64,000 nt of DNA, from sequence record NC_048054.1; one strand, 5' to 3'. Both the position numbers and the translations under genes were made by a program. Positions 2,515 through 52,993 of the stretch are shown one piece after another. Under the pieces are notes generated by a model, which made no database searches, was not told where the DNA came from, and saw only the letters and a list, made by a program, of their open reading frames with translations. Within the stretch, counting starts at the first letter, position 1, and each line of letters starts with the position of its first letter.

Positions 2515-3212
2515 AGAACTTCTCCTCTCTCGTCAGTGACGTAAGGAATGCCGTTGCCTTTGCCCAATCCATGACGCAAAGCCCAAACGGTATCGGCATT
2601 CTCCTGCACGAACACTAACCCTTTTGTTTCTGGCTCACCCGCACTGTCTTCAAGTGCTGTAACACGCGCCGTAAGAAGCTGTGCATCAGTCTGAATAGTA
2701 CGAATGGCGCTAAGGTTAGAGTTAACGCGCTGGTTCATGTTGTTGAACATGGTGAAGAACGAATTGTTCATCGCCGTGCGAACGCCGTCCGTATAGGACT
2801 TAGGAATCAGTTCGTCGTTATCGTAGGTTGTTACACCTGAGCGCACAAGAACTTTACCGGTAAGACGTCCACCACTTGCGCTGATAATCTGAGGGGCTGG
2901 CAAATCAGCTTCGTCCCAGACTTGAACAGTGGTCATCACCGTATTGTAGTCGGTCTCTTCCTGCCACGTATTTCTATAAGGAGCTGTGGCAGTTTTGGAT
3001 TTACGACGCATCACCTTTTTATAGTTAGCGCTCGTACCGTCCGCGATAATCCAGAGACCGTTCAGTGGGAAAACGCGAGTGTAAGGCTCGGCGAATGCTA
3101 AGATGATCGTCACATCAGCACTTACCTTATACACAATATCGTTCGACGCTGACAGTCCTTGCTGTTGTGCAAGACTAATCAACGTGTCCACGTAGTTAGT
3201 CAACTGGCTCAT
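2388..3212 (-). CDS. Virion/tail-associated protein with C-terminal small beta domain
   Basis: AGGAG SD. C-terminal WALRHGLG..PYVTDERGE..DNVLLLTFLEPVSGTA matches the common phage W-x-I-x-H-N-L-G type module. Confidence 0.7.
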   Translation of the reverse strand: MSQLTNYVDTLISLAQQQGLSASNDIVYKVSADVTIILAFAEPYTRVFPLNGLWIIADGTSANYKKVMRRKSKTATAPYRNTWQEETDYNTVMTTVQVWDEADLPAPQIISASGGRLTGKVLVRSGVTTYDNDELIPKSYTDGVRTAMNNSFFTMFNNMNQRVNSNLSAIRTIQTDAQLLTARVTALEDSAGEPETKGLVFVQENADTVWALRHGLGKGNGIPYVTDERGEVLWPETVTPAEADPDNVLLLTFLEPVSGTAQLLYTPKAETNLQ

Positions 3213-3672
3213 CCGAGACTCCTAACGATTGAAGAATAATAGAACTTTTATCGGAGAAGGCCTTAGCGATCAGTTTGGCAGCAGCCTTATCGACAACGAG
3301 TGTGCTGATTTTCCCTTTGGTGTTGCACACAATAGTCTGCGGAGCAAACTGCGCACAAGCCAAAGCAAATAGCAGATGGTTGCCTAAGTCACCAGAGATG
3401 CTAATCTCAACGCCAAGTTCTGGCACTGAGATGTTCTGGTTGATTTCGGCAACGAACTGCGCCAGCACCACAGGGTCGATTTCAGGAGGCGCTGTATCAT
3501 ATCCTTCGACAAGATCAATCTGACCAGTAGAAGGGTCAAACGCGAATGCAGATGGGTCGCCAATGATTCTGCCGAATAGCTCGTCACTGACTTCAATGCA
3601 ATCGTCGTCTGTCTTCTCGCGCACACGACCAATGACTGCGTTCGTGGCGCGATTGATTTTGATTATCGGCAT
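3196..3672 (-). CDS. Putative tail-fibre assembly chaperone (158 aa)
   Basis: Follows a fibre gene; start moved to the ATG at 3672 (AGGTG SD, 1 nt after the upstream TAA); size and position typical of Tfa-like proteins. Confidence 0.5.
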   Translation of the reverse strand: MPIIKINRATNAVIGRVREKTDDDCIEVSDELFGRIIGDPSAFAFDPSTGQIDLVEGYDTAPPEIDPVVLAQFVAEINQNISVPELGVEISISGDLGNHLLFALACAQFAPQTIVCNTKGKISTLVVDKAAAKLIAKAFSDKSSIILQSLGVSDEPVD

Positions 3673-4719: not shown

Positions 4720-7593
4720 TTAACTGTCAATCTCGTCTGGCTCCCAGCACAGGATAGGACGGCGCCACACTTGGAATACGCCTTGAGGACTAGCGAGCCC
4801 ATCGAAGCAATCCATAGTTGTACCACCTGAGTTGCCGCTTTTCATCAGCGTCTGCAAGTCTTGATACCAAGATGCACGGCCACCAGAGTCAGCTTCAAAC
4901 AATCCTTCCCATACCATATCGAAAGCGCCTTTCCACGCATTGAAGTGGTGAGAAGAAACAGCACCGTCTTCCGTTGTACACAATACCATGTACTGATAAT
5001 CCTTCACACACGGAATCATGTAGTTGTTACCGCGTGGCATTGTCGTACTGTTATTGTTGAAGATACATTCCCAACCAGTACGGTCAGCAGCGCCTGTCGT
5101 CAGGAACAGCGGACGACGGATGATCATCATGATGCCGTTTTCTGTACCGCCATTCTTCGATTTCTCGCAGTACGCATTACAACGGAACGCTCGGTCAACG
5201 GTGAACGTCGTTGAGTTCGAGAAGTCTCGGTTATAATAGTTAGCGCCCCACTTAGGCAGATATTCGGTAGGCGGTACGAAGAAATGACGCTCTGCAAGTT
5301 CAACCTCACCGTAGCGATCATACGCAAACACGATGTATTCATAGCCAGGCGCAATGGTAATGTTGTGGCCCTGAGTACCAACCCCGTTCCACTTCCAGAC
5401 AACCTGCCAGTCATTCGAATCACGCGATGCTTCTTCGGTAATGAGCTGATACTTACGCTCATAGATGTGCCACACTTTCCCTTCTTCTGTGGTGTTGATG
5501 TACAACGAGTTCGGGTCATTGATATTCCCGTTCTCAGTGCCGCAGTAAATCTTATGCGACGCACCAGCAGAGTTATAGATAGTGCCGGACCCGATTGAGC
5601 CAAACATATCCCAATTCATCATCAGGTGAGAGGTACACATTTCGTTCTGGCCGCTACCGTCCGACGTTGTGACAAGATATTCACAGAGGTCCTTGAACGG
5701 ATATTTAACGTAGCGATTGTTCGCACGGTTAACAACGTGAACCCAATCGTGGGACTGAATCTTAGGCACAGGGAAGCATGGGTTAGTTACGGAAACAACG
5801 AAGGTCTTTGTCTCGTACATAGGCAGCTTCTTGAAACGGTTATCCCTAATCGTAACAGTATGCTGCATACCCATTGTCGAAGCACCATCCTGAGAGCCAA
5901 GCACTTTGTAGTAGCGCAGATGACTGCTCTTGGTGTTTTCGAACAGGCCATTGAGCGCCATGCTCATGTTACCTTCGCGGTCTGTGCCTGTCACGTATGG
6001 GAAGCCATTCGTATCGAAGTCATAGCCGACAGAGAAGTAACTGTCAGTATCAGATGACTTGGCACCACGATACATTTCATTCCACGCGTTACCCTCACCA
6101 ATACCAGGCTCACCGAACAGTGAGTATGCAGCACGATACACGTATTGCGATCCTGCGTACACACGACGCGATGCACCGATGCGATACATGGCTTGAGGCA
6201 GACCGCCCTGCAGTCGGTTAACGTCGGCTGTATCGTATGACACAACGTAGACGTAATGGTCAGAGCCGATAGAGTTCAGGAAAGCCGCACATGCCTGAGC
6301 ATTCGCAACGCCTGGGTTAGTTCCTTCGGCCGATGCGTGAATGTCAAATGTACGACGCTCCACCAGCGCAAGGTCAGACTTACGAATCTTATAAACGTTC
6401 CAGCCACGAGTATCGGTGTAGCGGGTACCGTTAAAGATCGTGTAGCCTGTATCTCCTGTGTCCAGATAACGCTGATAGCCTACAACGTGAGAGAAGATTC
6501 GGCTACGCGCTGCAAGCGATTGAGCATTCTCGTTTGACCAACTAACAGACACGTCACCCGCAGCCATACGTGCTGCCCAATCGTCAGGCTTGTATGGATA
6601 TGTTGTGACGTCGAAGTCTACCTGATATGCAGAGCCAGGTTCGACGCAGCACTTATCACGATAGATAAGAGGCGGGTCAAGGATAACGTCATCGGAGATA
6701 TCAACCTGTCCGCAATAGAACTGACGCCATGTGCCAGGCTGGCCACCGATAGTACCTGGACCTGCTTGAGTGGTTCCTGTGAACTGATACGCGGCAGAGA
6801 CTTCGAAGTTGATTTGGTTATGCAACTGCACAACGTTAGTCCAAGATACGTGGTTGCCGAACGCGTTAATGCTTTTGTTCTTTGCTGCGACAGTGGCCGC
6901 AATATATGCTTGGCCATTGCTGCGAATACCGAGTGGGTTGAAGATCGCATTGAAGTTTACGTTACCTTCATACGGACCTTTCTGCAACACAATCAGGCTA
7001 ACACCATTACGATGCGCTTCACGCAGAGCAGTAAGCATCTGAGTAGGCATACTCTGGTTGGTAGCAGACAGCAGAAGCATTACGCAACTGAACTGTTTGA
7101 AATACTTGTACGTACCATCGTAACCATACGCACCAGCGTTAATCTCTTGCCAGCTATGTGCCAGCATGTCGAGAGGGATGCGCTGCATATACGCAACGAG
7201 TTGTCCCCACGACTCCATTGCAGTGTCATCATTGACAGGTGCAAGGTCTGATATGACAAGCATGGTGCTGCCATATGTGATGTTCGAGTTGTAGCCGCGT
7301 TGTGTCAACAGGTGACGCAGCACACCCATGTTGTTAATGCTCTTATTGCGGTAGTTACCGAGCCAACCGTAGTTAGCATCAACAAGAGGACTACCGTCAC
7401 GGACGAATCGACCATTCATGTAGACAGAGCCGAAGCCGCATACGTATGAAAGAGCATGACCATCAACAACAAAAGAGGTGAAGCGTGAGCTATCAACTGC
7501 CATAGCGTCTACTGCGGTAATAGAGCCATCGCCAGGACTACCGCTAAATACAGGCGTAATGCCTCGCGCATACAAGCAGCTTTGTTGCAGCAT
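4720..7593 (-). CDS. Large putative receptor-binding protein with ILEI/PANDER (GG-lectin-like) domain and three C-terminal repeats
   Basis: 957 aa. RTFDIH..AAFLNSIGSDHYVYVVSYD..YRAAYSLFG fits ILEI/PANDER. Three W-x-x-V...RRP/ERK repeats at the C-terminus. Confidence 0.65.
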   Translation of the reverse strand: MLQQSCLYARGITPVFSGSPGDGSITAVDAMAVDSSRFTSFVVDGHALSYVCGFGSVYMNGRFVRDGSPLVDANYGWLGNYRNKSINNMGVLRHLLTQRGYNSNITYGSTMLVISDLAPVNDDTAMESWGQLVAYMQRIPLDMLAHSWQEINAGAYGYDGTYKYFKQFSCVMLLLSATNQSMPTQMLTALREAHRNGVSLIVLQKGPYEGNVNFNAIFNPLGIRSNGQAYIAATVAAKNKSINAFGNHVSWTNVVQLHNQINFEVSAAYQFTGTTQAGPGTIGGQPGTWRQFYCGQVDISDDVILDPPLIYRDKCCVEPGSAYQVDFDVTTYPYKPDDWAARMAAGDVSVSWSNENAQSLAARSRIFSHVVGYQRYLDTGDTGYTIFNGTRYTDTRGWNVYKIRKSDLALVERRTFDIHASAEGTNPGVANAQACAAFLNSIGSDHYVYVVSYDTADVNRLQGGLPQAMYRIGASRRVYAGSQYVYRAAYSLFGEPGIGEGNAWNEMYRGAKSSDTDSYFSVGYDFDTNGFPYVTGTDREGNMSMALNGLFENTKSSHLRYYKVLGSQDGASTMGMQHTVTIRDNRFKKLPMYETKTFVVSVTNPCFPVPKIQSHDWVHVVNRANNRYVKYPFKDLCEYLVTTSDGSGQNEMCTSHLMMNWDMFGSIGSGTIYNSAGASHKIYCGTENGNINDPNSLYINTTEEGKVWHIYERKYQLITEEASRDSNDWQVVWKWNGVGTQGHNITIAPGYEYIVFAYDRYGEVELAERHFFVPPTEYLPKWGANYYNRDFSNSTTFTVDRAFRCNAYCEKSKNGGTENGIMMIIRRPLFLTTGAADRTGWECIFNNNSTTMPRGNNYMIPCVKDYQYMVLCTTEDGAVSSHHFNAWKGAFDMVWEGLFEADSGGRASWYQDLQTLMKSGNSGGTTMDCFDGLASPQGVFQVWRRPILCWEPDEIDS

Positions 7594-20822: not shown

Positions 20823-21211
20823 TTGTCTTCGAGCTTAGGACAACGCCATGTGACCACGCACACGTAGGTCTGGTCAAATTGCTCGCTCGCAGTACATGCG
20901 GTTTGAACGTTAGTCACATCCTGCGTCAGACCATTGTACGGGTCTTCAAGTGCAAGGCGCATATACGTTGCAATCCAGTCGGCCGTCGTTTGATCGAACG
21001 GCTCAAAGAGATATTGATACACGTCAGCGCCGAAGTTCTCACGCCACTTACGGGATTTCTTGCGCGTACCAATTACCATCAGAATCTTTTGGACAATGCT
21101 GTCCATGTTCTGAACGTTATCACGCGGTTCGAGTTGAATCCACGCATTGATATCACAATAGATGCGCTCACTAATAGGCACATCTATCAGTCTAATTCCG
21201 ATTCCTGCCAT
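20789..21211 (-). CDS. Baseplate wedge protein, gp25/GpW-like
   Basis: SIVQKILMVIGTRKKSRKWRENFGADVYQYLFEP is the gp25 family pattern; adjacent to PAAR and J-like genes. Confidence 0.85.
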   Translation of the reverse strand: MAGIGIRLIDVPISERIYCDINAWIQLEPRDNVQNMDSIVQKILMVIGTRKKSRKWRENFGADVYQYLFEPFDQTTADWIATYMRLALEDPYNGLTQDVTNVQTACTASEQFDQTYVCVVTWRCPKLEDKQSITFAMRAQ

Positions 21212-21501
21212 CAGCCAAATCTCACGTTAGAACTACCGTTAGATGCTGTGTCGCCGCAACTGTTTGCATCGCCAGCACGTTGGGCCGGCTTACCGTTGAC
21301 ACGCACACTGGAACTAGAAGTAGCTTTACCTGTATGTGGTGGCTTCTTTGGTTTCCAGTGAGGACGATAACTATCGCCTTGGCGAACACTCCCTTTTCCA
21401 TTCACAAGCACGTTAGAAGATGCCTGTGCAGGGACAACAGGAAAATAACCGTTATGGCCTGTAGACAGATCTGTGCCTAAACGAATAGCTTTCTGACCCA
21501 T
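21211..21501 (-). CDS. PAAR-repeat spike tip protein (T4 gp5.4-like)
   Basis: AIRLGTDLSTGH, VLVNGKGSVRQGD..H, VRVNGKPAQRAGD..CG..GSSNV. Confidence 0.9.
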   Translation of the reverse strand: MGQKAIRLGTDLSTGHNGYFPVVPAQASSNVLVNGKGSVRQGDSYRPHWKPKKPPHTGKATSSSSVRVNGKPAQRAGDANSCGDTASNGSSNVRFG

Positions 21502-21502
21502 G

Positions 21503-21628
21503 TTATTTCCTCTTGTCTGAGGCTCTAGGAATTTTTGGAGCCTTTGCGGGCACGAAGGGACTCGTATCGAGTTTTCGTTTACCGTGAAGAATGTCTAAAT
21601 ACTGTTTCCAATTGGTGCAGCGGCTCAT
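21503..21628 (-). CDS. Small basic protein (41 aa, MSRCTNWKQYLDILHGKRK...)
   Basis: GAGGAG SD 6 nt upstream; TAA-C-ATG coupling to PAAR; GCTAATTT motif 23 nt upstream. Confidence 0.6.
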   Translation of the reverse strand: MSRCTNWKQYLDILHGKRKLDTSPFVPAKAPKIPRASDKRK

Positions 21629-21650
21629 GGTATTCTCCTCTGTTAGACAC

Positions 21651-21658
21651 AAATTAGC
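21651..21658 (-). promoter_or_regulatory. GCTAATTT motif, candidate late promoter for the baseplate operon
   Basis: Located between a terminator and the first gene of the operon. Confidence 0.55.
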
Positions 21659-21671
21659 TTGTTGTGCAGCA

Positions 21672-21707
21672 GAAACGAAAACGGGCGACCCGAAGGCCAC
21701 CCGTTTT
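21672..21707 (-). terminator. Rho-independent terminator closing the ncRNA-like interval
   Basis: AAAACGGGTGGCC-TTCG-GGTCGCCCGTTTT then CGTTTCT. Confidence 0.8.
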
Positions 21708-21737
21708 CTAGTGCTTGGATTTTGTGTCGTTACTCCC

Positions 21738-21896
21738 TCACACCCGAAGCGAGTGCCTATCAGCTTTCGCTGGTAAGCCGGAGTGGAAGACCGAGAGTGG
21801 AGCCGCACGCCACGGCAACAGTAAGTGACTCTCGGGCCTAGATAGCGCGTGACCAAGCAGCACAATCGCCATCAACGACACGAAGAACAAAATCAT
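21738..21896 (-). CDS. Possible 52-aa hydrophobic peptide (MILFFVSLMAIVLLGHAL...)
   Basis: AGGAG SD 5 nt upstream and an 18-aa hydrophobic N-terminus; its 3' part overlaps strong RNA hairpins. Confidence 0.35.
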   Translation of the reverse strand: MILFFVSLMAIVLLGHALSRPESHLLLPWRAAPLSVFHSGLPAKADRHSLRV

Positions 21897-21964
21897 GTTT
21901 GCTCCTGTGTCTCTCTGTAAGTAAAACATTTGCAAATGTCGATCAAGTTACTTCGAATTGCCCT

Positions 21965-22362
21965 TCGCCCAACATCACTAGGGTTTCAATTCTTTTTCTC
22001 TCTTTACCGCCTGGGTTGCGGCGAACCGCGCACAAGAACAACGCTTCAACGATACGTGGGCAGGAAGGGCACGTACCGCATTCACATCGCTCAAGCGAAG
22101 GAGGTCTCCCATCGGTGATCTGCGGTGGTTAATACACTCTTTAACAATCGCTCTTGTTGTGCATTAGATCGTGGTAGGAACGCGATTGACCGCTAACAAG
22201 TCCTATACGATATTTCACTACCCGGAAAAAGTGGGCAAGCTATGGCAGCACGTCAACGACAGCAGGCGCGGACACACTCCATTAAGCATTGTTAAGGGCA
22301 ACACTTAACAGGCTGTGAACAGCTTTGACCAAATGTAGAGTCGCTCGTCGCCCAACATCACT
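21965..22362 (-). repeat. 15-nt direct repeat AGTGATGTTGGGCGA (copies at 22348-22362 and 21965-21979)
   Basis: Exact match; both copies preceded by CAGG-NN-GTAAA(A)GAG and enclosed by different but pairing stems. Confidence 0.85.
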
Positions 22363-22957
22363 TGAGTATCTCGTCTACACTCTTTTACTCCCTGAATACC
22401 GTACAAGGAATACGGCACCCATGAGGGTCTGCGGATGTTTATCACTCTCAGACTCTTGAGCCACTATCTGGAAACTAACACGTTGAGTCGTCCGCTGGAT
22501 GACGTGTTAGCTCTCCTCTCCCCGTCGTGCGAGGGCCAGAGTGGTAGCTGATGGATTGTCATGAAGTCCTGACAGGAGTCATCGCTTCCCAATGCCCACA
22601 GAGTGAAAGTCTATGCGCATCAGGCAGCGTAGGCTGCGGTACTGCTGTCCCTATTAGATGGTCCACAACGTTGAGAATACGTTCCAACCATCTACGTGCC
22701 TAGAGGCCATTGCCGTGCCATGTCTTATGCAAGATGAAATCAAGCTGGGTCCTGGTAGACGTCAGCAGCAGAGCAATAGTCTATCACGTGGGTGCCGGGG
22801 TTGTCCTCACGATTACAGAGCGTAAACTCAAACCGGCTGGAGGCCTATGTGTTGGCAAGAACAACTCACAGGTTTATGGCTCACGGAGAGCGCCCGCTAA
22901 GTACACTCTCCGTTGATACATCTTGATATTACTATCTGCAATTTTTATTTACAGATT

Positions 22958-24721
22958 TTAGAACGCTTTACGTTCGATATTCGAATATAAAGTTTCATAC
23001 GGTTCAGAGTAAAGCTCAGGTCCACGCTGTGCGCGAATCGTCACGTAACCCGTATGACGATTGAATGCAATAATCTCGACCGTAGGCTGTTTAGGCTTGA
23101 TGGTCGCATAGATAGGAGCATTCATTGTTGGTTCGTCTGTCTGAATCTTATTTACAGATTGCAGAGCAGCACCAGAAACGTTAGGCAGATTAAAACGCAG
23201 TTCAGCGCGTTTCTGACCGAACGCAGTACGTAGCATACCTGCTTCCAGAGGAACACCATTCTGCTTGAGATATGCAGCGATACGACGGCCGATACCTGTG
23301 AGCTGGTCGCGAGTGCGTGGGTCGAATGTACCTTCGAAGCTGATTGCTTCTGACGGTTGACGTACAGACAAATGCAGGCCTGTGTTGAAGTAGCCTTCGG
23401 TCAGCAGACGCAGAATCTCTTTGACCACTTCTTTGGTGTTCGGCTTGATAGCAGCGATACGCAGTTCAGGCACGTCCACTTTCACAGGGTCACGCAGTTC
23501 GGTCTGGTTGTCCATGTAACCGAGAGATACGTGCTTTGCGTTGGTGTACGTGTGTTGCAGAACACCAGTTGCGCGAATCAGTACAGAGCCACCTTTCGCC
23601 TGATCATAAAGTTCATCGCTGGTGGTTGTGCTAAACAGGTAGTAGTCTGTAGGAACAGCCATGCGATTAACAGCTTCAATCGCTTTGGTCTGCGCTTCTT
23701 TCACAGTCGTACCGAATACAACACGGCTACGGTTAGGCTGTGCAGCAGATACAGGGAAGAACGCACCGTACACGACGCTTACGTTTTTCTTAATCGGCTT
23801 TTCAGACTGTATTTTCTTACCGCCAGTCAGCGCAGGCAGCTTGACGCCCACCAGCTTACCTTTGACGATATGTTTGTTCTCTTTAACAGGCTTGAGGCCG
23901 TCAATGAGTTTCGCCAGATCAGCACCGCTAAGAATCTTCTCCAGCGGAACAGCAAGGTTCTGCGGCAGATAGTGCTTCTTGCGGAACATGTAGATGACGG
24001 TGTCTTTCTTGATCTGCATTGGCGTAGCCATGTTGCGACCAATAACACCGACAGGCTGGAACGTGTTTGCTTTATCGTCAGCGACTGCACCGAACTGCTT
24101 GGTGAACTCAGTCTGACCGATGATGTTAGCGGCACGTAAATGACCACGAACGATAAACACGATCTTCGGTTCATCTTTCATGCGCAACTCGTAGCGGTCA
24201 CGGTTCAGATAAACCATGCTGAACTTGTCGCCCTTCTCCAGCTCCAGATCGTACTCGTCGTTAGCGTCGTCGATAACAACTTTCTTACCCTGATAGGTAG
24301 CGTACACGCGAGGACCAGCAGACTCGGAAGCAATCTGCATTGCCTGGCCAGTGTTAGACAGAGAAGCAGCAAAGTCCATGACAGCAGGCATCAGGTCGAA
24401 TGAAGATGCTACTGCATACGGCTCACGCTTCTTACCGAGCTGTACGTGGACAGCGCTACTGCTGGACATGAACACAGTATTACCTGTGTCTTCATGGGTA
24501 CCAGCGAAGTGCATACCACTAATACGTTCAATGATGTTTGCGTTAAGCGATTGGAAGTTTACTTCGCTTCCTGCGGTGAAGTCATAAATCTCACCGTTAC
24601 GCCACGCATATGCCACGTTGTTGGAGCTAAGACCCACAAAGGCATCACCCAACTGACGAATGGTCAATGGCATGATGCTCAGGTCACGAATAATCGAAGA
24701 CTGCTTTTGAATGAGGTTCAT
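22958..24721 (-). CDS. Putative virion (head) protein, 587 aa, carrying the shared ~65-aa domain
   Basis: Long ORF with typical codon use; IASESA motif followed by YQGKK..EKGDKF domain. Confidence 0.7.
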   Translation of the reverse strand: MNLIQKQSSIIRDLSIMPLTIRQLGDAFVGLSSNNVAYAWRNGEIYDFTAGSEVNFQSLNANIIERISGMHFAGTHEDTGNTVFMSSSSAVHVQLGKKREPYAVASSFDLMPAVMDFAASLSNTGQAMQIASESAGPRVYATYQGKKVVIDDANDEYDLELEKGDKFSMVYLNRDRYELRMKDEPKIVFIVRGHLRAANIIGQTEFTKQFGAVADDKANTFQPVGVIGRNMATPMQIKKDTVIYMFRKKHYLPQNLAVPLEKILSGADLAKLIDGLKPVKENKHIVKGKLVGVKLPALTGGKKIQSEKPIKKNVSVVYGAFFPVSAAQPNRSRVVFGTTVKEAQTKAIEAVNRMAVPTDYYLFSTTTSDELYDQAKGGSVLIRATGVLQHTYTNAKHVSLGYMDNQTELRDPVKVDVPELRIAAIKPNTKEVVKEILRLLTEGYFNTGLHLSVRQPSEAISFEGTFDPRTRDQLTGIGRRIAAYLKQNGVPLEAGMLRTAFGQKRAELRFNLPNVSGAALQSVNKIQTDEPTMNAPIYATIKPKQPTVEIIAFNRHTGYVTIRAQRGPELYSEPYETLYSNIERKAF

Positions 24722-32499: not shown

Positions 32500-35139
32500 T
32501 CACATGTAGCCCATAGTAATCATGTTCAACATCGGGTCATCCATAAAGATTGGAATCGAATCGAGCGAATGTGCGTTACTAGGACTTGCGTTGTTAGAAC
32601 CGCTTGAGCTTGGACGTGAGGCAGCAATTGCTTTAGGAACCTCAGGCGTTGGAGCTTGTTGCACAGCGGCGGGTGCTGGAGCTTCTGTACGAGCAATGTC
32701 GCCCTCAGTAACGAGTGGCTGTCTCGCAACAGTGTCTTCCTGCTTGACCGTAGGTGCAATGCGATTAACTTCTGGAGCTTGCATCATAGCGTTCGGAGCC
32801 ATGTTACCTAGCTGAGTAGCAGCCACAGCTTCTGGCTTCTGTTCATCAGTCTTCGGCGTCTGGGCAGCAGCGACCTGCTGTGGCTTCGCAACGTCTGCGG
32901 GCAATTGCTCTTTATTTACAGCTTTCTTCTGGCGATCTGCCTCGGCAACCTTGAGCAATACGTCTTTCTCATTCTGCGCTCGCATTGCAACGGATTGCTG
33001 TGTCTGAGCATCAGATGATTTGAAATATTTGCCAGTCGTTGCAGCCTTGTAGTCCTGAATGGTCTTAATCAGATCATCGTCAGACATGGCGTTAACGTCT
33101 TTGCCTTGCAGTGCATTGGAGATAACACTGGTGCCAGCTCCATACTGAACCGCCGTGCTGTACAGAAGTTCTTTCACGCCAGCGCCACGCTTCGTCAAGT
33201 CAATACCCACATCGTTCTGTGTCTTAGCAACGAGAGGTGCATAGTGAGTGCGCGTGATATAATCCGACTGTGCTTTGTCGAACGCTTCGCCCTGCGTGTT
33301 CGCAATGTCTTTGTAGACAGAGTTGAACTGTGACGTACCTGGAGCCAGACCACCGAAGCGTTCAAGGAACGGTTTACCTTCAGGGCTGTTCAGGAAGTTC
33401 ATCATACTACCGTTGTTCGTGGCCAGCTGGTGCTTACCATAAGACACACCACCATAGTCACCACGACCAGTAGAGACAGTACCTACACCACGGCCACCAG
33501 ACTCGAACTGCTCTGACACAGCACCAAGACCGCCCTCAGCAATTGCTTTATTGGCGATATCAGTAACCTGTTTGCTGTCATAGCGTTTAGCAGGTTGGGC
33601 ACGTAACGGACCTTGATAAGTACCGCCACCCATACCCATTCCCATCATGCCCATGCCTAATGCGCCGAAACCAAATGGCGTTGGAGTAGGTGAAGGGAAC
33701 TTAGCTTTGTTCTCGTTCTCGTCAGTGGTCTTGTTGTACTCCTCCATCTTCTCTTTACGGTCTTTCTCACCCTCAGCCAGCATCTTATCTGACTCGTCAG
33801 TTATCTTCGTAGAGACATACTCACCTACGGAGCTACCGAAGTAGTCACCAAGAATACCACCGATAGTAGCACCAAGCGCAGCGCCCGCAGCAGTGCCGGC
33901 TACAGGAACAACTGAACCGAGAATACCACCAATCCAACCACCAGCCACTGCACCGATAGAGCCACCGGTAGCACCACCAACGGCAGATCCAGCAGCCTGC
34001 TTCTTAGCCTGCTCTTTCTCAGCATCAGTCATCTCCGTGTCGCTATTGATATGACTTATATTGTTCGCGTACTGCAAACCATTGCCGAGCACTGAGCCAA
34101 CAATAGGGATCTTCTTCGATGCGCCAGCAAGCAACACGGTAGCGCCATCGACGGCAGCATCCTGCACGACAGAAGGAGCTCGTGGGACTTCACCCTCTAC
34201 TTTTTCTTTTGCTGTGTCATCTGCGCGTTGTACTTCTTGTTGCTGTGCTTGTGGTTGAGGCTGCGCTGGAGCTTCTGGCATACCTGCGCCAGCATTCGAT
34301 GCGTTGTCCTGCTCGAACTCCTCTTGCGATTTGTTCTTTAACCACAGACCACCCACCGTAGCAGCAGCTACACCAGCGAGTGCTAACATCGCACCAGCTT
34401 TGCCTCTCAGTCGAGGGAATCGTGAACGAGGGAGGTTGCGTCCTGGACCACGACGTTGACCTGCGCCTCTGCCGTAACGTCGGCCACGGCGATTACGACC
34501 ACCGGTACGGCGACGACGATTATCGTTGCCATTATCACCGAAATCAGGACCGCTATTATCATCTGGCTGGCTGTCGTCATCTGCTGGACCTCCTGTGCCT
34601 GGACCACCAGCACCTGGCTGTTGCCCATGAGGGTCTGACTTAGCGCGGTTCTTCTCTTTGAATGCTTCGCGCTTTTCCCACTCCAGCCAATCTTCGAGGG
34701 CTTTCTGCGTCTTGGTTGAGACTGCATTGCCTTCTTTGATTGCTTTAACGATATCATCGCCTGACTTCTCACCTGCAATGAACAGGTCTTCAAGCGCGGT
34801 CTCTACTTCACGAGAGTTTGGCTGTTGAGCTACAGGACGCGGAGATGCAACCGACTGCGGTTCGCCTTCAACATAACGAACACGCTGGTTAGCCATCTTC
34901 TCGCGCATAGCTTTCGCAGCACGGTTCTTAGCCCTTGACCCAGGACCAACGTACACAACTTCTTCGTCGTACATCTCTGGGTCATAGTCGCGCTCAAAGT
35001 CGGCTTGCGTCTGATAATCATTCGCTGCCTTACGTTTGCGCTTTGGCTTTGGCATACCTGCTACGGAGGAACTAACGTTATCCGCATGTTCGATCATTAG
35101 TTCGAGTGCGGACAACTCTTTCTCTTGTGGCTTAGCCAT
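32500..35139 (-). CDS. Tape-measure-like protein with VgrG3-type muramidase domain
   Basis: Coiled coils and Gly/Ala-rich TM-like segments. LGAVSEQFESGGRGVGTVSTGRGDYGGVSYGKHQLA..STAVQYG resembles the VgrG3 C-terminal lysozyme-like domain. Confidence 0.75.
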   Translation of the reverse strand: MAKPQEKELSALELMIEHADNVSSSVAGMPKPKRKRKAANDYQTQADFERDYDPEMYDEEVVYVGPGSRAKNRAAKAMREKMANQRVRYVEGEPQSVASPRPVAQQPNSREVETALEDLFIAGEKSGDDIVKAIKEGNAVSTKTQKALEDWLEWEKREAFKEKNRAKSDPHGQQPGAGGPGTGGPADDDSQPDDNSGPDFGDNGNDNRRRRTGGRNRRGRRYGRGAGQRRGPGRNLPRSRFPRLRGKAGAMLALAGVAAATVGGLWLKNKSQEEFEQDNASNAGAGMPEAPAQPQPQAQQQEVQRADDTAKEKVEGEVPRAPSVVQDAAVDGATVLLAGASKKIPIVGSVLGNGLQYANNISHINSDTEMTDAEKEQAKKQAAGSAVGGATGGSIGAVAGGWIGGILGSVVPVAGTAAGAALGATIGGILGDYFGSSVGEYVSTKITDESDKMLAEGEKDRKEKMEEYNKTTDENENKAKFPSPTPTPFGFGALGMGMMGMGMGGGTYQGPLRAQPAKRYDSKQVTDIANKAIAEGGLGAVSEQFESGGRGVGTVSTGRGDYGGVSYGKHQLATNNGSMMNFLNSPEGKPFLERFGGLAPGTSQFNSVYKDIANTQGEAFDKAQSDYITRTHYAPLVAKTQNDVGIDLTKRGAGVKELLYSTAVQYGAGTSVISNALQGKDVNAMSDDDLIKTIQDYKAATTGKYFKSSDAQTQQSVAMRAQNEKDVLLKVAEADRQKKAVNKEQLPADVAKPQQVAAAQTPKTDEQKPEAVAATQLGNMAPNAMMQAPEVNRIAPTVKQEDTVARQPLVTEGDIARTEAPAPAAVQQAPTPEVPKAIAASRPSSSGSNNASPSNAHSLDSIPIFMDDPMLNMITMGYM

Positions 35140-52954: not shown

Positions 52955-52993
52955 GTTATTCTCCAATCGTCAGTAACACTGGTATTTACAGCC

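Follow-up and report, generated by a model that had tools for sequence, protein, structure and literature searches.

A predicted large structured RNA joined to a small hydrophobic peptide gene in the structural gene block of Dickeya phage vB_DsoM_AD1 as well as its relatives

Introduction

To our knowledge, bacterial and phage RNAs of more than about 500 nucleotides (nt) with dense conserved structure are rare, and nearly every such class whose function has been solved is a ribozyme, a ribonucleoprotein core or an RNA-only assembly. The GOLLD and ROOL RNAs lie next to transfer RNA (tRNA) genes. The phi29 pRNA, a part of the packaging motor that measures under 200 nt, shows that an RNA can serve as a structural component in phage machinery, and the structured regulatory RNAIII of Staphylococcus aureus encodes a small amphipathic peptide as well. 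GOLLD and ROOL are often borne by phages or prophages, and cryo-electron microscopy shows that they form RNA-only multimeric assemblies (bioRxiv 10.1101/2024.12.08.627333). Here, we describe an RNA locus in a 64,000-nt stretch of sequence record NC_048054.1 (the window), which corresponds at 100% identity to Dickeya phage vB_DsoM_AD1 (AD1), a jumbo phage of the genus Alexandravirus with 261.7 kb. Positions are those of the window, equal to the record position minus 62000. An initial annotation, made from the sequence without database searches, had proposed that the only long gene-poor interval of the window holds a large structured RNA on the minus strand. The comparison of homologues leaves us nearly certain that a real, selected, structured RNA is located there on that strand. 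The complete interpretation, according to which a single minus-strand unit carries a structured RNA acting by its fold together with a peptide gene, is given a probability of roughly 0.6.

Like GOLLD and ROOL, the AD1 RNA is phage-encoded, falls in the range of several hundred to more than 1,000 nt, and combines covarying helices, pseudoknotting and invariant junctions with a non-coding body. Unlike GOLLD and ROOL, which are neighbours of tRNAs, it is located in the tail/baseplate gene block, carries a small open reading frame (ORF), and consists of duplicated modules that occur in different numbers in different genera; neither family matches it in sequence or structure in Rfam 15. It shares with the phi29 pRNA the position of a phage-encoded structured RNA among morphogenesis genes, but the Rfam model of the pRNA gave no match, and a place of the AD1 RNA in the virion or in an assembly would be conjecture.

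Results and discussion

A gene-free interval with a strand-specific RNA signal

The 1,456-bp gap from the gene of the PAAR spike-tip protein to gp115 has no annotation in AD1. Within it lies the part of the window that stays longest free of ORFs of 80 amino acids or more on either strand (21866-22957). It measures 1,092 nt, far more than the 245 nt of the runner-up, in agreement with the single long gene-poor interval of the initial annotation. TAA, TAG and TGA are each present in all six frames of the interval, and a recoded gene or one using an alternative code was therefore rejected. No hidden conserved ORF was found in the first ~1,030 nt, which form the RNA body, and the only ORF conserved across the gap is a small one at its 3′ end.

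The folding energy of the region was compared with that of dinucleotide shuffles, a check that had been suggested together with the original proposal, and the shuffles were exceeded on the minus strand only (z = -4.0, versus -0.45 on the plus strand). Two coding controls gave z values of -1.6 and +0.1, and a second run on a 1,000-nt stretch gave z = -3.03, with 0/20 shuffles as stable. In an alignment of 16 phages covering 21671-22925, RNAalifold predicted 228 consensus pairs, 109 of which had at least one compensatory double change, while alignment columns 1-100, 388-500 and 745-830 were too variable for a consensus. The consensus fold of the sense alignment reached -223.9 kcal/mol with these 228 pairs, compared with -137.6 kcal/mol and 167 pairs for the reverse complement, and the sense structure contained 502 G-U cells versus 32 A-C cells (16:1). 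The asymmetry between G-U and A-C cells and the better sense consensus fold thus indicate a minus-strand RNA, and not DNA cruciforms or a plus-strand transcript.

A non-circular test used the minimum free energy pairs of the AD1 sequence alone. Scored in the remaining 15 phages, these pairs yielded 613 compensatory cells, compared with 206-253 when the partners were slid by 1-5 columns. Furthermore, sub-alignments served to build three covariance models (R1 for domain D1, R3 for domain D2, and R2 for module B), and each model was then used to re-align the sequences. The share of paired cells was 98.0% for D1 (alignment A5), 96.5% for D2 (alignment A10), and 93.3% for module B (alignment A7, consisting of 36 matches including paralogues and other genera), with double changes in 15/29, 13/25, and 36/43 pairs, respectively. 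The covariation scores of D1, D2, and module B were 0.419, 0.420, and 0.318, compared with 0.156, 0.193, and 0.121 after shuffling, and with at most 0.08, 0.143, and 0.064 after sliding. For all three models, 0/500 shuffles reached the observed paired cells, the number of pairs with double changes, or the covariation score, although the domain alignments were fitted to their models, which favours pairing, and the relatedness of the sequences inflates the shuffle statistics. The slid controls and the test with AD1 pairs are fairer yardsticks, and both agree with the shuffles. The large structured minus-strand RNA of the original proposal is thus backed by abundant covariation among homologues.

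These data also bear on the possibility that there is no RNA gene at all, and that the interval represents the remains of a protein gene or instead acts at the level of DNA, for instance as an origin, a packaging site, or a recombination hotspot. The content of the slot between gp115 and the PAAR gene does vary between genera, and some depositors annotated short ORFs in it. However, these ORFs are not kept in position, strand or frame, and the helices are preserved by compensatory changes at identities as low as 57%. A strand-specific signal such as that in the G-U to A-C ratio, the consensus fold, and the folding z values would arise neither from a DNA cruciform nor from neutral decay, so that we consider this explanation extremely improbable.

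Architecture of the RNA

The features of the unit and its flanking genes are listed in Table 1. The initial annotation had assigned about 1.2 kb to a non-coding RNA. The non-coding part holds for ~1,030 nt, while the last ~160 nt (21738-21896) are a conserved small ORF. This hydrophobic ORF at the 3′ end, the internal duplication, the pseudoknot, and the shorter forms in further genera go beyond what had been noticed before.

Table 1. Positions of the RNA, its domains, and the adjacent elements and genes in the window
Feature	Position	Strand	Remarks
Whole unit	21671-22957	minus	~1.25 kb; box, RNA body, small ORF, terminator
Upstream box	22925-22957	minus	33 nt (AATCTGTAAATAAAAATTGCAGATAGTAATATC), promoter-like; near-invariant in 16 phages, flanks diverge
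Non-coding RNA body	21897-22924	minus	~1,030 nt; covariation, no conserved ORF
P1, 5′ hairpin	22883-22913	minus	Variable stem, conserved loop CUUAGCGGG / CAUAGCGGG
Domain D1	22692-22848	minus	Branched, plus long hairpin; invariant junction strands CCUCCAGC and UGUAAUCGUGAGGA
Domain D2	22581-22692	minus	Hairpin 22654-22692 and hairpin H; model R3
Hairpin H	22585-22627	minus	Loop CUUUCAC, highly conserved
Middle domain	22315-22584	minus	Variable stretch, pseudoknot, module A; absent from L051
Pseudoknot	22431-22510	minus	Hairpin 22475-22510 (CTAACACGT/ACGTGTTAG), conserved 18-nt loop
Module A	22335-22448	minus	Shorter paralogue of module B; match of model R2
Three covarying hairpins	22168-22323 (22312-22323, 22279-22311, 22168-22211)	minus	Conserved linkers; several double changes
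Module B	21952-22140	minus	Closing two-part stem, invariant single-stranded ACCUCCUU, two internal hairpins
Small ORF	21738-21896	minus	52 codons and stop; hydrophobic N-terminal segment, unconstrained tail
Covarying helices over 3′ half of small ORF and short 3′ untranslated part	21732-21835	minus	Double changes
Intrinsic terminator	21671-21708 (stem-loop 21677-21708)	minus	14-bp stem (8 G-C pairs), UUCG loop, T run; terminator scan
PAAR spike-tip gene	21211-21501	minus	Downstream of the gap, followed by baseplate and tail genes
gp115	22958-24721	minus	587 amino acids; immediately upstream of the slot for the RNA; annotated only with a KMPT-N domain (residues 139-201)

The stems of the 5′ hairpin P1 vary by lineage yet remain complementary (GGAGAG/CUCUCC, AAGAUGC/GCAUCUU, GAAGAAC/GUUCUUC, and CCAGACAG/CUGUCUGG; alignments read by eye). 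The first hairpin of domain D2 is formed by TAGATGGT.../...ACCATCTA. In the pseudoknot, the 18-nt loop pairs downstream with 22451-22455 and 22431-22435. Covariation affects at least five positions of its stem. The helices between the loop and the downstream strands are retained in every sequence, and three of their positions show compensatory changes, among them one from GC to AU in contig L054. The three covarying hairpins correspond to alignment columns 704-716, 717-749, and 826-869.

Model R2, which was built from module B alone, matched module A in AD1 with 43 bits (E about 1e-9), indicating that the RNA contains an ancient internal duplication. A match at the place of module A was found in most phages searched, the exceptions being the Sasquatchvirus loci L004 and L017 and the deletion variant L051. 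The latter is without approximately alignment columns 390-712 (~22315-22584) but keeps gp115, the box, the remainder of the RNA, the small ORF, and the PAAR gene in unchanged order, and this natural deletion implies that the middle domain is separable. Module B also contains a UAAAGAG linker and a hairpin with a GUGAUG loop.

All but one of the hairpins quoted in the initial annotation are kept in relatives, and most of them are supported by covariation. They include the 5′ hairpin P1, the first hairpin of D2, the hairpin of the pseudoknot, TGTTAAG/CTTAACA, which is the hairpin at 22279-22311, TACGTG/CACGTA and GCGG-TTCG-CCGC, both within module B, as well as CCGAGAGT/ACTCTCGG and CAGC-GAAA-GCTG. 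The one that did not stand is ACCGCA/TGCGGT, the bases of which take other partners in the consensus. Across the RNA, many invariant single-stranded stretches adjoin covarying stems, an arrangement typical of RNAs with tertiary structure or bound partners.

Distribution among related phages

BLAST searches found the region in 34 Alexandravirus records with 73-93% identity. In Sasquatchvirus (Y3, SNUABM_52) and Snuvirus (SNUABM_7, 13, 34, and others), patchy matches extended over the same ~1.27 kb. Extra copies were sought through the gp115 protein and the conserved RNA pattern, which yielded homologues in the viral metagenome contigs L023, L026, L034, and L040, in the contig L051 described below, and in the ENA and Logan contigs L053-L055. 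L034 and L040 are two contigs of sample 3300013825 that overlap within the RNA and were compared separately, without joining them. Full-length homologues are accordingly known from Alexandravirus, Sasquatchvirus, Snuvirus, and metagenomic contigs, and the lowest identity to AD1 is 57-59%.

Shorter forms were recognized in other genera, always just downstream of the gp115 homologue. In Salmondvirus (JA11, JA29, L059), the sequence right after this gene gave D1 matches of 17-23 bits (E 9e-5 to 2e-3) and one or two A/B-module matches of 21-27 bits (E 4e-6 to 3e-4), and the Yersinia phage fHe-Yen9-02 gave an A/B-module match of 32.8 bits (E 2e-7). Modules were also recognized in this slot in Rivsvirus and Yoloswagvirus, with borderline scores. 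Hairpin H with its CUUUCAC loop and very different stems was found by BLAST, motif search, and folding in Yoloswag, SNUABM_5, L057, L058, and the Yersinia phage, while model R3, which comprises the two hairpins of D2, did not reach other genera at E <= 0.01. L059 has three shorter copies related to hairpin H, which are without the exact CUUUCAC loop. No RNA gap follows gp115 in L056, the most distant gp115 relative found (33% identity). Among the known forms of this modular RNA, which goes with gp115 across the whole clade, that of AD1 is the largest.

Three further loci deserve a separate description. The 34.7-kb sequence L051 (JAVWLC010000001.1) is labelled as a metagenome-assembled genome (MAG) of Raoultibacter sp. 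and contains a thymidylate kinase gene, a gp115 homologue, the RNA, the small ORF, and the PAAR gene. With its gene order as in Alexandravirus, it looks like a jumbo-phage contig misbinned into an actinobacterial MAG. In L058 (Logan ERR14654846 contig), whose gp115 homologue is 47% identical, the slot is a gene-free gap of 1,341 nt (4977-6317). It holds a terminator, a box, hairpin H, and short shared elements, with no significant match of R1 or R2 to D1 or the A/B module, and may contain a strongly diverged form of the RNA. Finally, in the Salmondvirus gap (L006 and L019), the element AAUCUGUAAA is present in four copies in JA11 (L006). One of these copies is aligned by the covariance model to the UCUGUAAU strand in the junction of domain D1, so that the motif may have a role in the RNA, besides or instead of serving as a promoter.

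The small ORF at the 3′ end

The small ORF is open at the same place in 16/16 phages with 47-53 codons, and all insertions and deletions are in frame at a nucleotide divergence of 40%. In its first 20 codons, the column entropies of the three codon positions are 0.63/0.23/0.67, and the low value of the second position points to selection for hydrophobic residues. The last ~30 codons have no such periodicity (0.74/0.84/0.83) and coincide with covarying RNA helices (columns 1234-1278, 1285-1339, 1297-1308, and 1317-1333). The AD1 product begins with MILFFVSLMAIVLLG and had no match in Pfam, PHROGs, NCBIfam, or PADLOC. The ORF is also present in Yoloswag, where it is annotated, in SNUABM_5, and, judged by eye, in Salmondvirus, and in these phages other small ORFs separate it from the RNA next to gp115. 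Taken together, it appears to be a genuine, older gene for a small membrane peptide, which in Alexandra-, Sasquatch-, and Snuviruses is located on the same unit as the big RNA.

The unit is a candidate dual-function RNA, with a structured part and a small ORF that are both conserved and no terminator between them; the two would be co-transcribed and the ORF translated. By analogy, it may be likened to RNAIII, which also joins a long multi-hairpin RNA to a short ORF for a membrane-active-looking peptide. The two are not homologous, however, and the AD1 RNA is twice as long and has its ORF at the 3′ end. There is also a likeness to type I toxin mRNAs of the hok/sok kind, in which a hydrophobic ORF of ~50 codons lies near the 3′ end of a highly folded mRNA, with the start inside a stem and a terminator hairpin close behind. 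In size and N-terminus, the predicted peptide agrees with the hydrophobic products of under about 60 amino acids encoded by type I toxin genes. In contrast to these mRNAs, the AD1 unit had no toxin-family match in Pfam, NCBIfam, PADLOC, or PHROGs, its ORF tail is unconstrained, and the RNA upstream of the ORF is several times longer. An overlapping or adjacent antisense gene with a conventional promoter was not found either, the only plus-strand promoter-like site being at 22186-22214, far from the ORF.

The likeness to toxin mRNAs raises the question of whether the RNA body is a cis-acting leader, in other words a 5′ untranslated region of ~1 kb that controls the stability or translation of the mRNA for the hydrophobic peptide, in the manner of type I toxin mRNAs or of those for other membrane peptides under tight gating. 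The ORF follows in the same unit with no terminator in between, it encodes a peptide of 47-53 amino acids with a hydrophobic N-terminus, RNA helices overlap its 3′ half, and its Shine-Dalgarno sequence and start codon lie within a conserved GACAC/GUGUC stem. Nevertheless, the peptide gene occurs without the full RNA, and with other ORFs in between, in Yoloswag, SNUABM_5, and Salmondvirus. A Shine-Dalgarno sequence is present in most lineages, but SNUABM_3 and the Snuvirus phages keep the RNA without a recognizable one, and the invariant CCUCCUU stretch of the RNA is independent of its presence. Pairing in cis between CCUCCUU and the Shine-Dalgarno sequence was accordingly rejected, as the two do not co-vary across lineages. 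Besides the lack of a match to Hok/Gef or another toxin family, a kilobase of pseudoknotted, duplicated, and deeply conserved structure far exceeds what known leaders of such genes generally need. We therefore regard a mere leader as unlikely, though it is the most credible of the alternatives considered here.

Promoter-like box, terminator and gene neighbourhood

The AT-rich, promoter-like segment that had been pointed out upstream of the RNA proved to be the near-invariant 33-nt box. The gp115 homologue of Yoloswag, SNUABM_5, L057, and L058 precedes a terminator hairpin, after which come a related box (AAATCTGTAAATA.TAATT) and the RNA slot. Because the box follows a terminator in these four lineages, we infer that it is the promoter of an independent unit, and the RNA is expected to start inside the box or just downstream. 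A reading of the inverted repeat in the box as a hairpin was rejected, since the repeat is broken in L034, and the promoter-like reading was consequently preferred. The box presumably resembles the late-promoter box of T4-type phages.

The box core CTGTAAATA has four copies on the minus strand of the window and none on the plus strand, and may mark a class of phage promoters. The other copies are located at 52981-52992, 32911-32922, and 23148-23159 on the minus strand, and the one near 52990 lies within an intergenic spacer of 27 nt, 24 nt ahead of the start of a gene. AD1-type phages are members of the PaBG-like group of jumbo phages and have their own sigma-70-like factor (PMC7412058). At the other end of the unit, the UUCG terminator claimed in the initial annotation was found at 21677-21708 as a G+C-rich stem-loop with a T run, and all homologues as well as Salmondvirus retain it.

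The genes around the RNA locus are all on the minus strand. The gp115 protein is conserved throughout the clade with 33-99% identity (34 clusters), and the RNA slot is always directly downstream of its gene. The AlphaFold model of gp115 is confident (predicted local distance difference test 80), but its comparison with folds in the PDB gave no match at E <= 0.001, a weak YajQ-like hit (E 0.04) being unreliable, and a sequence search against PDB chains found nothing. A partner of the RNA can therefore not be named from gp115.

In relatives, the gap between gp115 and the PAAR gene is either unannotated or filled with scattered, mutually inconsistent short 'hypothetical proteins'. Those annotated within the RNA in GenBank and RefSeq are on either strand at non-homologous places, with neither position nor strand nor frame kept. 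They comprise 3113-3271 and 3820-3969 in L003, 1491-1967 in L012, 680-823 and 1226-1387 in L014, and 1782-1925 in L011, and are probably spurious calls.

Two observations concern the region that separates the PAAR gene from the RNA terminator. An ORF of 41 codons with a strong Shine-Dalgarno sequence is located at 21503-21628 on the minus strand, within an insertion of ~125 bp that is present in AD1, 2910A, SNUABM_33, and the SNUABM_3 group, whereas other Alexandraviruses are without it. This ORF is annotated in 2910A and SNUABM_3, though not in AD1, and has no family match. The ~45 nt from the RNA terminator to the next start codon (21630-21670, minus strand, AACAAGCUAAUUUGUG.CUAACAGAGGAG) are almost invariant in three genera and could represent promoter or translation signals of the PAAR/baseplate operon.

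Comparison with known RNA families

The initial annotation had reported no hallmarks of tRNA, transfer-messenger RNA (tmRNA), RNase P, or introns and had supposed an undescribed RNA, which agrees with the results of the Rfam 15 search (4,227 models). At gathering thresholds, there were no matches in the 64-kb window. In E-value mode (E up to 10), the region gave two chance-level hits, one of which was the terminator hairpin, and nothing was obtained at E up to 1 with four divergent homologue loci. On this basis, GOLLD, ROOL, HEARO, OLE, raiA, RNase P, tmRNA, 6S, CsrB/RsmB, group I and II introns, and the known small ribozymes were rejected as families. According to a full-text search, the publications on these phages, which deal with taxonomy and biocontrol, do not mention the region, and the RNA is described neither in a large survey of structured RNAs from viruses nor in the work on ornate RNAs.

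The element exceeds 500 nt, contains covarying helices, a pseudoknot, and conserved unpaired nucleotides, and has no conserved ORF in its body, all of which are characteristic of large ornate RNAs. In the sequence, the ends of a predicted discrete transcript would be marked by the promoter-like box and the intrinsic terminator. The RNA is a new family within the known kind of large ornate phage or bacterial RNAs, for which the coding tail, the internal duplication, and the variation of module number between genera are unusual.

An intron-like element or a new ribozyme would process itself, and the size, the pseudoknot, and the invariant junction nucleotides are indeed as generally found in large ribozymes. 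However, no group I or II intron or small-ribozyme model matched, even at E up to 10, and the element is located between complete genes. The stop codon of gp115 directly precedes the box, and in every lineage the small ORF opens with a start codon of its own. Relatives in which the full RNA is absent or much reduced keep gp115 and the small ORF as separate genes, with no continuous exon. An intron was thus rejected, and self-processing in general appears highly improbable.

A trans-acting decoy or sponge could titrate a host RNA-binding protein or a defence sensor. The RNA is phage-encoded and confined to one clade, and multivalent binding would fit well with its repeated modules and fixed-loop hairpins (GUGAUG twice; CUUUCAC, for which L059 has up to three related copies). 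For a CsrA/RsmA sponge, however, GGA motifs are not enriched (17 seen versus 20.7 expected), no CsrB/RsmB, 6S, or other sponge family of Rfam matched, and there is no defence-related protein nearby. A CsrA/RsmA sponge was accordingly rejected, and a decoy of any type is considered improbable.

Proposed mode of action and significance

The ~1.25-kb unit would be transcribed from the box, along with the surrounding structural genes. The RNA body would then work as a folded molecule, either as the scaffold of a ribonucleoprotein or in an RNA-only assembly, in which the invariant junctions, loops, and duplicated modules would provide repeated binding surfaces. A scaffold, an anti-defence decoy, and a packaging RNA were roles conjectured in the initial annotation. 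Its mode of action would accordingly be neither simple antisense pairing nor that of a mere leader. The small peptide gene may be an older neighbour that now shares the transcript, giving rise to a dual-function RNA. We favour such a scaffold or assembly role, expressed with the structural genes, because invariant junctions and loops, freely covarying stems, a pseudoknot, and duplicated modules are combined in one molecule, but we hold it tentatively, with slightly less than even confidence.

Several points weigh against the interpretation as a whole. The transcript, its ends, and any processing are predicted from the sequence, and the domain alignments were fitted to their models, as discussed above. 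The matches in Rivsvirus and Yoloswagvirus are borderline (15-16 bits, E 0.003-0.006). A cis-regulatory role is possible in view of the Shine-Dalgarno sequence and start codon in the conserved stem. Moreover, gp115 was rejected as an identifiable RNA-binding or enzymatic partner, as the KMPT-N domain is its only annotation and there is no significant fold match.

The RNA is cleanly bounded and occurs in cultured phages of the tractable hosts Dickeya solani and Erwinia amylovora. Its homologues are diverse enough for structure inference, and natural variants, namely the deletion of one domain and the module numbers differing by genus, hint at the core parts. For the published genomes of these phages, the results mean that several 'hypothetical proteins' in the slot should probably be discounted, and that a conserved membrane-peptide gene of ~50 codons has mostly been missed.

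A more far-reaching idea, which we consider rather doubtful at present, is that the AD1 RNA is the founding member of a clade-wide modular RNA family, acting as a structural or catalytic RNA in a phage process linked to the tail/baseplate gene block or to gp115. The reusable modules of this family would be the D1-type junction, hairpin H, and the A/B module, each genus having its own number of them, and its members might form an RNA-only or RNA-protein assembly late in infection, or might be a new ribozyme. If this holds true, tailed phages would possess a type of RNA machine that has not been described for them so far.

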